Shown here one piece after another: positions 38,179-60,161 of a DNA stretch of 64,000 bases. The translations under genes were made by a program, and so were the position numbers. The notes under the pieces were generated by a model, which saw only the letters and a list, made by a program, of their open reading frames with translations, was not told where the DNA came from and did no database searches. Source of the stretch: Anaeramoeba ignava BMAN (taxonomy: Eukaryota; Protista; Anaeramoebae). Where the stretch lies: contig JAPDFW010000125.1 in assembly GCA_028826165.1 (NCBI GenBank), positions 310,001 through 374,000 on the forward strand, read 5' to 3'. The stretch's first letter is position 1, and every line of letters begins with the position of its first letter.

Positions 38179-41100
38179 ATGGTAACAGAGATAATTTCAA
38201 AAATCTTACAATTATTACAAGCAATACGTGAACAATTTTCTATTGCTGAATCAGAAGAGAGAGAAAGAACTCGTGTTTTCTCATTAGTTAATAAGCTCAC
38301 AGAACCAATTCAAAGTAAATTTTAGTTAAATTATTTTTTACAAATAAAAAAAAAGCAAAAAAAAAATTTTTTATGATTTATTCTTTTGTTATTCTTTATT
38401 ATTAATTGATATTCTTTATTTTTAGTTCTTAATGAATCACCAGAAGAAGCAGCTCAAAAAAAAGAAGATTTAGAAGCAACACAAAATGCACTTATTGATT
38501 ATTATCAATTCTTGTCATCACAAGTAAAAAACGAAAACAAAATTAATCCTTTTTTAAGAACAAAAGAAACTCGTGAAATCTTTGAGACACTTGAAAGTAA
38601 ACTGAATGATTGTATTACTCGTCTTTCTTCTTCAATTGGAATTGAACCAATAGAATTTGATATTTCTCAAGTAATTGAACCTCAAGATCCAAATTTATCA
38701 TCTCAAGTTATGAATATGGGAATGATGATGATGAACCTTGAGAATTCTAATCAAAATTGGCAATCTCCTAGTCATACTTTCTATATTTCAAATCAGGAAA
38801 ATCTTATCCCAGATTTAGCACGTATTGATTCTAATGCAGAATCTTATACCTTTGATATTTTGAGAGAAAAATTTGGATTAGATAAACAATCTGCAAAGAT
38901 TCTTTTTGATACTTTTGATATGTAAATTATAAATTAAATTATAAATTAAATTATAAATAAAATTATAAATTAAATTAAATTAAATTAAATTATAATTCAA
39001 AAAAATAGTGAAAGAAAAGGATCAATTACTCCTCAAGAATTTAAAGAAAGAAGAAAAATTATTGAAAAAGGATCAGTTCCAGATAAAGCTTCTTTTGTAT
39101 TCAAAAGTTGGGATCTGTAAATAAAATAATTTTAATTAATATTTAAATAAATATTTTTAATCATTATTTTAATAAATATTTTAATTAATATTTAAACAAA
39201 TATTTTAATTAATATTTTAATCAATATTTTAATAAATATTTTAATAAATATTTTAATTAATATTTTAATTAATATTTTAATAATTATTTAAATTAATATT
39301 TTAATTAATATTTTAATTAATATTTAAATTAATATTTAAATAAATATTTTAATAATTATTTTAATAAATATTTTAATAAATATTTTAATAAATATTTTAA
39401 TAAATATTTTGATATTTAAATAGATATTTTAATCAATATTTTAATTAATATTTTAATTATTTTAATAAATATTTAAATTAATATTTTAATTAATATTTAA
39501 ATAAATATTTTAATAAATATTAAAATAAATTTTTTAATATTTAAATCAATATTTTAATAAAATTTTTAATTAATATTTTAATTAATATTTAAATTAATAT
39601 TTTAATAAATATTTTAATAAATATTTTAATAAATATTTAAATTAATATTTAAATAAATATTTTAATAAATATTTAAATCAATATTTTAATAAATATTTTA
39701 ATTAATATTTTAATAATTATTTTAATAAATATTTAAATAAATATTTAAATTAATATTTAAATAAATATTTTAATTAATATTTTAATAAATATTTAAATAA
39801 AAAGTGATAAAAATGGATTTCTTGATATTGATGAAGTTAAATATGCACTTGAAAATGCATACATCTTAATTACAAAATTTTATTTTATTCGCAAATTTGG
39901 AAATCTTGACAAATACATGAAATCATTAAACGGACTTGAAAAGAAACGATTCAAAAAAGAATTCAAATCCAAAGTGAAAGAAATGATGAAAAAGAATGAA
40001 GTTGAAAAATATATTAATTACATGTTTGATCAAGCAGTTAAAAATGAAGATGATGAACTTTCACTTGAAGAATTTGTTAAATATTGTGAACAACCAAACA
40101 ATATTGTTTTCACTTTCTTGAATGCTTTATCAGAAACTATGAATATTTTTATTCATGAAAAAGATATTCCAAAAGAAGTACTTGATGAAATGAAAAAAGA
40201 AAAGCAACGAATGAATAAAAAGCAAAACAAACAAGAAAAAGCGAAACTAATTCAAGAAGAGGTGCAAGTAATCGAAGTTACAACACCAATTAAATTAGTG
40301 AAAGAATTTTCTTATGTATTTATTATATTTAATATAAAATTTAAAATTATTTAAAAAATATAAAATTAAAATTGATTTAAAAAAAAATAGCCAAATGTTC
40401 TTCTTTTAGCTTCAGATGATAGAGAGGAATACTTAAATGATGTTGAAAATTCCATTAAAAGTAATGGGACTTGCTTTGTAACTACGATTAACGGAAAAGT
40501 CTTTATTCCAAGTTTTGACGATCTTTTAAATTTCAATATTATATTTTTATATGCAGATTATAATTGGCTTGATAACAAACAATTAAGTGAAAATCTAAAA
40601 CTTTATGTTGAATCGGGAGGAAAATTGATTATTTGTTCAGCATTTGCATTAGCAACTGATTTCCCAAACAAAGATCTTGTTGGATCAATTTTAGATTATA
40701 TTCCACTTTCAAAAGGAGTTGTTTCAAGAAACGAACCAGTAAAAATTGATTTGAAATTTGGACACAAAATATTAGAAGGAGTAAATAGTTTTGATGGAGG
40801 AGATAAATCATTTAGAATTAAAACTAACAATGTTAATGGAGGACAAATTCTTGTTAAATGGGATGATGGAACACCTTTAGTTACTCAAAAAACAGTTTTA
40901 GGAAAAGGTGGAAAAAATGGAAATGTAATTGTTTTGAATATGTTTCCTTGCTCAACAAATGCAATACCAACAGGATGGGATAGAAAAACAAATGGACATA
41001 GATTGATTGCTAATACAATTTATCATTCATTTTATTCACCAAATTCAATTTATATTCTTCCACCTCCAAGACCAATAGTAATTTATTCCAAAATAACAAA

Positions 41101-57500: not shown

Positions 57501-60161
57501 AATAATCAATTTTCCTCCTGATTCAACATAAAGTTTTAAAGTTTCACTTAATTGTTTGTTATCAAGCCAATCATAATCTGCATATAAAAATATAATATTG
57601 AAATTTAAAAGTTCATCATATTTTGGAGTAGAAGTTCTTCCATTAATCTTGGTTACAACACATTTCCCATTACTTTTAATTGAATTTTCAACATCATTTA
57701 AGTATTTCTCTCTATCATCTGAAGCTAAAAGAAGAATATTTGGCTATTTTTTTTTAAATGAATTTTAATTTTAATTTTAATTTTAATTTTAATTTTAATT
57801 TTAATTTTAATATAATAAATACATAAACATATTCTTTAACTAATTTGATTAGTGGTTGTATTGGTTGTTGAATTGGTTGTTGAATTGGTTGAATTGGAGA
57901 TCTATTGTATAAATATTGTTGATTGGGTGTGATTGGGGTTATTGGCTGCTGGTAATTGGGAGTGAATTTAGGTGATTGAGTTTGGTAATTTGGGGTATTG
58001 GAAACCAAATAATTTGGAGTATTTAAATTCGGCTGAAATTTTGGTGAGCGAGATTGATATGGAGATTGTTGATATTGAGGTTGTTGATATGGAGGTTGTT
58101 GATATGGAGGTTGTTGGAATTGAGGTTGTTGGAATTGAGGTTGCTGAAATTGAGGTTGCTGGAATTGAGGTTGTTGATATTGAGGTTGTTGATATTGAGG
58201 TTGTTGATATTGAGGTTGTTGATATGGAGGTTGTTGGTATTGAGGTTGTTGATATGGGGGTTTTTGTTGTTGTTGCTGTTGTATTTGGCTTTTCATTTTC
58301 TGCTCTTGTTCGATTTTTTCTTGTTGAAGTTTTTGGTCTTTTTGTTGTTGTTCTAATTTTTCTTTTTGAATAAGAGATTGACTTTGTCTTGTAAGTAATT
58401 CTTTTTTATGAGTTTCTAGTTTGTCTGGAATTTTTTTCATAAACGCATCTGGTGAATCTTCAAGGAAACTATTCATTGTTTCTGATAAAGCATTGAGGAA
58501 AGTGAATGTTACATTGTTTGGTTTTCCACAATATTTAACAAATTCTTCAAGTGAAATTTCATCATTATCATTTTTAACTGCTTGTTCAAACATGATTTGA
58601 ATATATTTTTCAACTTCATTCTTTTTCATAATATCTTTCACTTTGGATTTGAATTCTTTTTTGAATTGCTTCTTTTTAATAGGATCTAAAGATTTCATAT
58701 ATTCAACAAGACTTCCATAATTTTCTGAGAAAGAAAAACTAGCAATTAAAGTGTATGCATTTTCAAGCGCATATTTAACTTCATCAATATCAAGAAATCC
58801 ATTTTTATCACTTTTGATTTAAATATTTATTTTAATATTTATTTTAATATTAATTTAAATATTAATTAAAATATTTATTAAAAATATTAATTAAAATATT
58901 TATTAAAATATTAATTTAAATATTTATTGAAATATTTATTTAAATATTGATTAAAATATTTATTAAAATATTTATTAAAATATTTATTTAAATATTAATT
59001 AAAATATTTATTAAAATATTTATTAAAATATTTATTAAAATATTAATTAAAAATATTTATTAAAATATTAATTAAAATATTTATTTAAATATTTATTAAA
59101 ATATTAATTAAAAATAATTGACTTACAGATCCCAACTTTTAAAAACAAAAGAGGCTTTATCTTGAACTGATCCTTTTTCAATAATTTTTCTTCTTTCTTT
59201 AAATTCTTGAGAAGTAATTGATCCTTTTCTTTCACTATTTTTAAATTGATTTTTAATTTAAATTGATTTTTAATTTAATTTAAATTTAAATTTACATATC
59301 AAAAATATCCAATAAAATTTTGCCTGATTTTTTATCTAATCCAAATTTATCAATGAAAAATTGAGAAGTATAACTTTCATTACTCTTTAAGTTTATTACT
59401 GTTGGTCTTCTTTCGAGTTTTGGGTTTTTTGGAATATAAAACTCTTCACTTGGATTTGACCAATCTTGCTGGAATTGCTTCATAAACATTTCAATTTTTT
59501 GGTTCATGTCTTTGATTTCTTTTTGTGTATCAGTTAGAGTGTTATCTATCTTAGTGACAGTTGAGGAAGTTTGAGTAACTGTAACATTTGTATGAATATT
59601 TAATTCAAGTGACAAATCGTCTCTGCATTGATCAAGTGCTTTTTCAAGAGTTTCAAATTGCCCCCTTATTTTTTTGGAAGAAAGAAATGAACTGATCTTT
59701 TTTCTTTTCACTTGTGCTTGTAAAAATGCATAATATCCATTTAACGCTGATTGCAAACGAGCGAGAGTTGCATATTTTTTTTGGGCTTGATCGATATTTT
59801 GTTGAAGAACTGATTTATTTATTATTTAATTTAATTTAATTTAATTTAATTTAATTTAATAAAAATTAATTTGCTTTTTTTTAATTTGATTATTTATTTA
59901 TTATTTTGTATGTCATTCTTTCATAAAATTGAGAAAATATTTTTATTTATTTTTGTTTTTTTTTTGTTTTTGTTTGTTGTTGTTTGTTATTTGTTTTTGT
60001 TTTTGTTTTTTGTTTTCATGTTTACATTCTAATGAAGGTGTAAGTTTATTCAAACGATCTAAAACTCTTTTTCTCTCTCTTTCATTGGACTTATAAGTAT
60101 CAAAAAGTCCTTTTACAAACATAATTGTTTTAAAAGCACCAGTAATTGCTATTTCTGCCAT
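54524..60161 (-). CDS. Cluster gene D: 4-helix bundle + EF-hands + Q/P/Y-rich linker + 4 GATase-like domains
   Basis: Starts MAEIAITGAFKTIMFVKGLFDTYK. GATase-like exons are 57743-57054, 56975-56298, 55968-55255 and 55174-54524. Confidence 0.85.
55995..56258. repeat. Intronic (TTTATA)n
   Basis: In the gene D intron between GATase-like exons 2 and 3. Confidence 0.93.
58060..58265 (-). repeat. Coding 15-bp tandem repeat encoding QQP(Q/P)(Y/F), about 13 copies
   Basis: Seen in ORF 57754-58698; present only in gene D. Confidence 0.93.

Follow-up and report, generated by a model that had tools for sequence, protein, structure and literature searches.

Four-helix bundles of the MLKL type act in animals, plants and fungi, where they are switched by a pseudokinase, by the NTPase of an NLR or by amyloid. 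Bundles also occur beside EF-type elements: the plant Ca2+-linked membrane proteins MCA1 and MCA2 combine an MCAfunc bundle, an EF-hand-like motif, a coiled coil and PLAC8, and the tyrosine-kinase-binding (TKB) region of Cbl is made of a four-helix domain, an EF part and SH2, followed by RING. Plant PUB ligases have an N-terminal bundle too. Neuronal calcium sensors (NCS) and KChIPs carry four EF-hands, two or three of which bind Ca2+, and are often N-myristoylated. In fungal NLR effector domains, the N-terminal bundle is swapped among binding domains (10.1101/2022.03.16.484565). Here we describe four paralogous genes, A to D, whose predicted products join an MLKL-type bundle to an NCS-like EF-hand region and to tandem repeats resembling class I glutamine amidotransferases (GATases). 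They occupy positions 38179-60161 of a 64,000-nucleotide stretch of the Anaeramoeba ignava BMAN genome (assembly GCA_028826165.1, contig JAPDFW010000125.1, positions 310,001 to 374,000, forward strand), hereafter called the window. A. ignava is an anaerobic amoeba that houses sulfate-reducing bacteria in a symbiosome (PMC11550330).

Since MLKL_N domains are common outside animals, the presence of a bundle is unsurprising; the novelty lies in the NCS gate and the repeat array. A first-pass annotation, made from the DNA sequence alone, knew of no description of this combination, and our literature search likewise found none, either of MLKL-type proteins in Anaeramoeba or of this architecture.

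Four gene models with an MLKL-type N-terminus

We rebuilt the four models from the DNA; all introns were GT-AG and there were no internal stops. The cluster is bounded by the ATG of gene A (38179, + strand) and that of gene D (60161, − strand), with intergenic gaps of just 260-310 bp. Gene A (38179..44265, +) has 8 exons and encodes 1320 residues. On the − strand lie B (44526..48510; 7 exons, 1147 residues), C (48795..54216; 7 exons, 1132 residues) and D (54524..60161; 8 exons, 1492 residues). All four share one architecture, namely bundle, brace, EF region, linker and repeat array, as the first-pass annotation had described. The array counts four repeats in A and D and three in B and C, that is, 14 in all, each encoded by a single phase-0 exon of 648-714 nt. 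Exon 1 (136 nt) and exon 3 (108 nt) have the same length in all four genes. Models A and C were identical to the GenBank proteins KAJ5067652.1 and KAJ5067654.1, which are named "calcium binding protein" and "T9SS type A sorting domain protein", the bundle having been missed in both. From the open frame and the public annotation, the bundle exons are predicted to be spliced to the repeat exons. A chance or low-complexity artefact was rejected as the source of the observation. Full-length searches were made with the public proteins of A and C, while B and D were searched exon by exon; the genome searched was the 42.8-Mb, 147-contig assembly, in which the window lies on the contig labelled C115.

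The bundle, the brace and the start of the EF region are encoded by exons 1 and 2 of A (38179-38314, 38426-38921, +), B (48510-48375, 48208-47686, −) and D (60161-60026, 59809-59296, −); in C (54216-54081, 53967-53457, −) these exons hold the bundle running into the brace helix. Residues 20-131 of C matched the Pfam family MLKL_N (PF22215) with 37.4 bits (E 2.2e-9), above the curated cut-off of 27 bits. The bundle of A, the most divergent of the four, scored 24.3 bits, under the cut-off. Single exons scored weakly (17.3 bits for exon 2 of D), and the B and D bundles are 54-73% identical to C or to each other. When 11 second exons of A. ignava were combined into a profile free of any MLKL sequence, it retrieved seven MLKL chains from the PDB (E 4e-7 to 6e-6), the next match standing at 0.2. 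MLKL also came first in the PDB with a profile of A-D plus a paralogue on contig C63 (E 0.004) and with C alone (E 0.001). Among 1.84 billion proteins, the bundle profile first matched three from A. ignava, followed by MLKL_N proteins from fish, fungi and other sources, including a Mycena protein with MLKL_N, NB-ARC and TPR. By these sequence comparisons, the N-terminus of A-D is an MLKL-type four-helix bundle followed by a brace.

Key positions of MLKL could also be followed. R32, R36 and P43 of C align with R30, R34 and P41 of human MLKL, in which R30 acts as the brace latch and killing depends on R34 (PMC10603135). The R30 equivalent is invariant among the aligned Anaeramoeba sequences and kept in A-D, and the R34 equivalent is present in B, C and D. 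D107 and E111 of human MLKL belong, with R30 and R34, to the residues needed for latch and killing; at the E111 position, B, C and D have Asp and A has Arg. The bundles of B, C and D are basic (charge +5 to +9).

An AlphaFold model of C residues 1-375 (predicted local distance difference test, pLDDT, 85; predicted template modelling score, pTM, 0.58) placed helices at 2-21, 27-49, 58-80 and 91-163. The predicted bundle starts at residue 2, with no N-terminal extension, and its last helix continues as a brace to residue 163, in line with the coiled-coil brace first proposed. Activated MLKL has an extended brace (PMC10603135). In the structural search, the top match of the model was MLKL (Z 10.6 and 10.5; root-mean-square deviation 2.2), and not a generic coiled coil lacking any MLKL match; lower down came AtMLKL3 (Z 8.8) and the NRG1 CC-R domain (Z 8.2). 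An Atlas feature search with the N-terminal 380 residues gave no usable match. When residues 1-400 of C were compared with proteins about as long, A and C alone were retrieved (best 8000 candidates).

The N-terminus had at first been assigned jointly to MLKL, RPW8 and MCAfunc bundles, of which only MLKL was retained. Neither RPW8 nor MCAfunc gave a Pfam match with full-length C at E 0.01; with no profile match, and with NRG1 CC-R only at Z 8.2, membership of RPW8/CC-R and of MCAfunc was rejected. Cbl TKB membership was rejected as well, there being no sequence match and no SH2 or RING despite a similar bundle fold. No kinase or pseudokinase was found by Pfam in A or C, nor any NB-ARC or NACHT domain; B and D are built from the same set of exons. 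NLR membership was rejected, since there is no NTPase and no diversifying repeats.

The EF-hand region and the GATase-like repeats

The EF region and the linker are encoded by exons 3 and 4 of A (39009-39116, 39805-40315, +), B (47598-47491, 47423-46775, −), C (53224-53117, 52300-51679, −) and D (59234-59127, 58810-57823, −). In A, the exon 3/4 junction splits the canonical loop, and in D the linker is long, of low complexity and rich in Q, P and Y. Pfam placed EF-hand_6 at residues 246-268 of C. As the first-pass annotation had it, the region is NCS-like: KChIP and NCS-1 align with it over EF2-EF4 (E about 1e-10), and NCS/KChIP proteins were also the top Foldseek matches. EF3, identical in A-D, is the sole loop with the canonical pattern; the EF2 and EF4 loops are degenerate, EF1 is mostly missing, about 35 additional residues separate EF3 from EF4, and there is no Gly2 for myristoylation. 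With one canonical loop, a truncated EF1 and no Gly2, A-D were not counted as full NCS/KChIP sensors. With a single canonical loop, the Ca2+ switch that had been proposed is weaker than was implied.

The same EF3-EF4 insertion was seen in stand-alone NCS-like EF-hand proteins of A. ignava (L034, L041, L046 and L048; contigs C135, C66 twice, and C78). These proteins end in a CaaX-like motif and have no myristoylation Gly at their start; they are possibly prenylated calcium sensors. They are also the likely source, we infer, of the EF module of the cluster.

The repeats follow, one exon each, at 40391-41077, 41223-41906, 42696-43385 and 43615-44265 in A (+); at 46699-46010, 45932-45246 and 45176-44526 in B (−); at 51440-50754, 50536-49850 and 49442-48795 in C (−); and at 57743-57054, 56975-56298, 55968-55255 and 55174-54524 in D (−). 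The last D repeat was modelled and adopted a class I GATase-like fold (pLDDT 91.5), in agreement with the tandem GATase-like domains first suggested. Its structural matches were STM3548 (Z 19.2), a GATase1-like domain (18.7), a ThuA-like protein (17.3), the IFT52 N-domain (15.8) and the middle domain of GH42 (15.4). The nearest Atlas models belonged to a BTB-BACK cluster (template modelling score 0.90) and to bacterial PEP-CTERM (0.88) and IPTL-CTERM (0.82) proteins. No Pfam model passed its cut-off on a single repeat. The Cys-His-Glu triad is absent from the repeats, and an active class I GATase was rejected. As for the GenBank name of C, no type IX secretion system (T9SS) sorting domain was matched in NCBIfam at E 0.1 and the chain stops where repeat 3 stops. 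A T9SS cargo was therefore rejected; the name was probably carried over from bacterial proteins having the repeat.

Several residues are invariant in all 20 A. ignava copies aligned: Ser-Asp-Asp-Arg after strand 1, Asp56, Trp59, Asn183-x-Phe-Pro-x-Ser (ending in Ser188) and Trp196. Most of them come after the end of a strand, on the face where proteins of this fold usually bind ligands, and we read them as one conserved, presumed binding pocket.

The repeat is not restricted to the cluster. The A. ignava genome gave 41 repeat-domain matches, and the inspected copies outside the cluster came after a BTB domain and were mostly single. A BTB gene on contig C67 (L013:2713-6833) has two tandem one-exon repeats of the same clade as the cluster's, and may connect BTB adaptors with the window's array. 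A single-repeat query found no homologue and the repeat profile found three; in prokaryotic genome contigs the profile found none, so that neither a donor nor a direction of transfer can be named. In another eukaryote (P0003, L052; GCA_006365095.1), on a contig of 50% GC, the same GATase-like domain comes directly after a BACK-like exon. Because of this arrangement, a gene transfer specific to Anaeramoeba is doubtful, and the association of BTB-BACK with the GATase-like domain is not confined to Anaeramoeba.

Mosaic evolution and portability of the modules

The first repeats of A-D form one clade (support 100/100). Repeats D2-D4 are 88-89% identical and look like the products of a recent exon duplication. 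Between genes, identity was 33-73% for the bundle, 74-92% for the EF region and 79-94% for repeat 1, the bundle being the most divergent part of the proteins. Synonymous divergence (dS) followed the same trend, at 0.30-1.35 for the bundle vs 0.03-0.35 for the EF region and repeat 1, a roughly 3- to 10-fold excess in the bundle (Fisher p 3e-4 to 3e-11, six of six gene pairs). This gap indicates that the genes are mosaics, which may have arisen through gene conversion that affected the EF and repeat-1 exons, or through exchange of bundle exons. The ratio of nonsynonymous to synonymous divergence (dN/dS) was 0.37-0.84 in every repeat pair, as estimated by a pairwise method that gene conversion blurs. 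The repeats thus do not look like a diversifying sensor array. The first-pass annotation had proposed a variable, NLR-like ligand-sensing array; with an invariant pocket (20/20), repeat dN/dS below 1 and a bundle more divergent than the array, this proposal was not supported.

The bundle is present in at least 12 genes of A. ignava, which also have the first intron in common. At least seven of them continue with EF, U-box and TPR domains, some also with TLDc. Loci of this EF-U-box-TPR(-TLDc) type were L010, L012, L022, L023, L024, L026, L044 and L045, on contigs C102, C143, C139, C36, C35, C9 and C100. Some segments are identical between the C9 and C100 copies, and two stops interrupt the C9 match, so these copies may be duplicated or broken. 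On contig C89, the bundle profile weakly matched seven exon-1 sequences, which fall into two groups (202524-215621 and 298228-308999).

On contig C63 (L009:3583-7733), a clean 9-exon model of 952 residues begins with bundle and brace, lacks EF and contains six RRMs. This bundle nests with those of B and D (98/94), which implies that the module moved recently. An RRM gene with no visible bundle lies immediately upstream, and the C63 brace has near-exact 7-residue repeats. In A. flamelloides (P0011, L053), bundle, EF and SH3 are found on one transcript, with EF loops that look canonical, so that the bundle plus NCS core predates the split from A. ignava. From this comparison of gene structures, the bundle, with or without the NCS core, is a portable module that takes interchangeable binding domains.

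Two other proteins with such a bundle came up. A metagenomic protein (P0019, JGI) has MLKL_N and, later, FHA domains; the segment after MLKL_N resembles by eye the Cbl EF-hand region, and suggests a second bundle-EF lineage linking MLKL and Cbl heads. A 257-residue protein of the fish Alosa alosa (P0023) has an MLKL-type bundle and, according to its database name, a CARD domain.

Around the cluster, a stop-free stretch of 77 codons at 37776-38006 gave no Pfam match, and gene A can be modelled without it. Elsewhere in the window, a 1368-residue open frame at 29006-33112 (−) has leucine-rich and ankyrin repeats with Ras-like and RGS domains, and SepSecS at 10226-11596 (−) indicates selenocysteine synthesis. 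An LZTR1-like Kelch-BTB protein (23850-25958, +), a KA1-domain kinase (2851-4560, +), kinase exons (14167-15558, +) and a PX-domain exon (17937-18989, +) are unrelated to the cluster.

Possible function and comparison with known systems

We estimate at about 0.5 the probability that A-D are cytosolic, single-chain, MLKL-like proteins that act on membranes and are gated by Ca2+ and a ligand. The anatomy is what we observed, and each dynamic step is modelled on MLKL and NCS biology. The NCS-type EF module and the array of binding domains would replace the pseudokinase of MLKL. At rest, the brace, and perhaps also the hydrophobic crevice of the NCS module, would restrain the bundle. Through their avidity for a single conserved type of ligand, the three or four repeats would bring the proteins together in clusters. 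Ligand clustering, together with Ca2+ at EF3, would let the brace oligomerise as a coiled coil and release the bundle, and the freed basic bundle would bind acidic lipids and permeabilise the membrane. The target could be the plasma membrane, leading to cell death, or the phagosome or symbiosome membrane. The cluster itself may have grown by duplication of whole genes and single exons; the EF and repeat-1 exons would have undergone gene conversion, and the bundle exons would have diverged and been shuffled onto other genes. An executioner or immune role is something that we only infer.

Several observations weigh against this proposal. In the structural search, gamma-tubulin complex bundles and the Cbl four-helix domain (Z 10.1) tied with MLKL, Z values below about 13 are weak evidence for helical bundles, and the alignment behind the C model contained MLKL-like rows; for these reasons the case for MLKL rests on the sequence evidence. 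With a pTM of 0.58, the C model defines no contact between bundle and EF module. The R34 equivalent is absent from A, whose bundle is acidic (−5), and B, C and D have Gln at the D107 position (Asp in A). The Ca2+ gate would depend on one loop. The 90% protein clusters of A and C contained no transcriptome-derived members, vs some for the A. flamelloides homologue. Last, a connection with ubiquitin is suggested by the other C-terminal partners, U-box in the case of the bundle and BTB-BACK in that of the repeat.

This last point leads to the main alternative, which we rate at clearly less than even odds: A-D would be non-lytic adaptors or scaffolds, in which bundle and EF form a protein-binding, oligomerising head comparable to Cbl TKB or to the N-terminal domain of plant U-box ligases. 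The repeats would then recruit the substrates of a trafficking pathway linked to ubiquitin, in which the U-box paralogues may also take part. The order of bundle and EF is indeed Cbl-like, as is the fold of the bundle (Z 10.1 to Cbl TKB), at least seven paralogues have U-box and TPR, and the repeat elsewhere follows BTB(-BACK), where CUL3 adaptors bind their substrates. An invariant pocket and repeats under purifying selection would also suit an adaptor. Yet sequence searches matched MLKL and never Cbl, the EF region is of NCS and not Cbl type, and A-D lack SH2, RING and U-box. Moreover, the bundle moved without EF to the RRM gene, and the latch arginine of MLKL was retained.

It seems improbable that the repeats are enzymes, either Ser-elbow hydrolases like peptidase E or glycan-acting enzymes, which bundle and EF would target to membranes under Ca2+ control. 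Such a role would fit Ser83, at the elbow after the fourth strand, which is found in 16 of 16 repeats of the cluster's clade and is preceded by Cys in 15, as well as the invariant Asp-Asp-Arg, Asp56, Asn183 and Ser188 at strand ends. However, the elbow position is Gly or Ala in four aligned BTB-linked copies and is not Ser in P0002 or P0003, and the catalytic His position is Phe in 20 of 20 A. ignava copies, no invariant His being present; we located the elbow and His positions from motifs and DSSP secondary structure, without superposing individual residues. In addition, the best structural matches include the non-catalytic GH42 middle domain, IFT52 N-domain and ThuA-like proteins. Just as unlikely is that the genes are mostly neutral, with little or no expression, having arisen in a repeat-prone genome by tandem duplication and the shuffling of exons: one-domain phase-0 exons do make arrays easy to generate, dN/dS is fairly high (0.3-0.8; one pair 1.1) and the A and C protein clusters offer no transcript evidence, but four frames stayed intact over 1100-1500 codons although bundle dS reaches about 1, the bundle-EF core is common to A. 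flamelloides, on one transcript there with SH3, and the pocket residues are invariant.

If A-D are indeed gated, MLKL-like proteins, a single-chain version with a Ca2+ sensor, in a unicellular metamonad with bacterial symbionts, would amount to a new gating principle, and regulated membrane damage in protists would become testable with small soluble constructs. More speculatively, and with rather low confidence, the family could be an NLR-free and kinase-free toolkit for defence or symbiont control, in which a portable MLKL-type bundle is gated by Ca2+ through the NCS module and by interchangeable binding domains, here by the ligand of a domain shared with bacterial surface proteins. If the bundle proves to be non-lytic, the family would instead show the MLKL fold as an adaptor, which bears on the role of the ancestral domain. 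The repeat itself, an unnamed GATase-like domain, occurs both in bacterial surface proteins and in eukaryotic BTB adaptors; a search for its ligand has a clear target in the invariant pocket.

How A-D stand among known systems can be summarized as follows. With animal and plant MLKL they share a homologous bundle at the start of the chain, a long brace helix and, in C, the R30, R34 and P41 equivalents; they differ in having an NCS-like EF region and three or four GATase-like repeats in place of a kinase or pseudokinase, and D107 is not kept in B-D. Like the HeLo, HeLo-like and basidiomycete MLKL-like effectors of fungal NLRs, they combine a bundle of the MLKL superfamily, swapped among C-terminal binding domains, with an arrangement in paralogue clusters, but they lack NACHT and NB-ARC and their array bears no sign of diversifying selection. 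The succession of a bundle, a coiled coil and an EF-type element recalls MCA1 and MCA2, whereas A-D have no MCAfunc or PLAC8 match in Pfam and possess a near-complete NCS-type domain with a canonical loop. As in Cbl and PUB ligases, a four-helix domain precedes EF-hands (Cbl) or, in the A. ignava paralogues, is associated with a U-box; unlike Cbl, A-D show no sequence match to it, have an EF region of NCS type and are devoid of SH2, RING and U-box. NCS-1 and KChIP are the closest relatives of the EF region by EF2-EF4 alignment and by Foldseek, from which it departs by its mostly missing EF1, its insert of about 35 residues between EF3 and EF4, its degenerate EF2 and EF4 loops, the lack of Gly2 and its position inside a large protein. 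Finally, the repeats have the fold of non-catalytic class I GATase-like domains such as ThuA-like proteins, STM3548, the GH42 middle domain and the IFT52 N-domain (Z 15-19), and are distinguished from them as tandem one-exon units placed behind an MLKL-type bundle.

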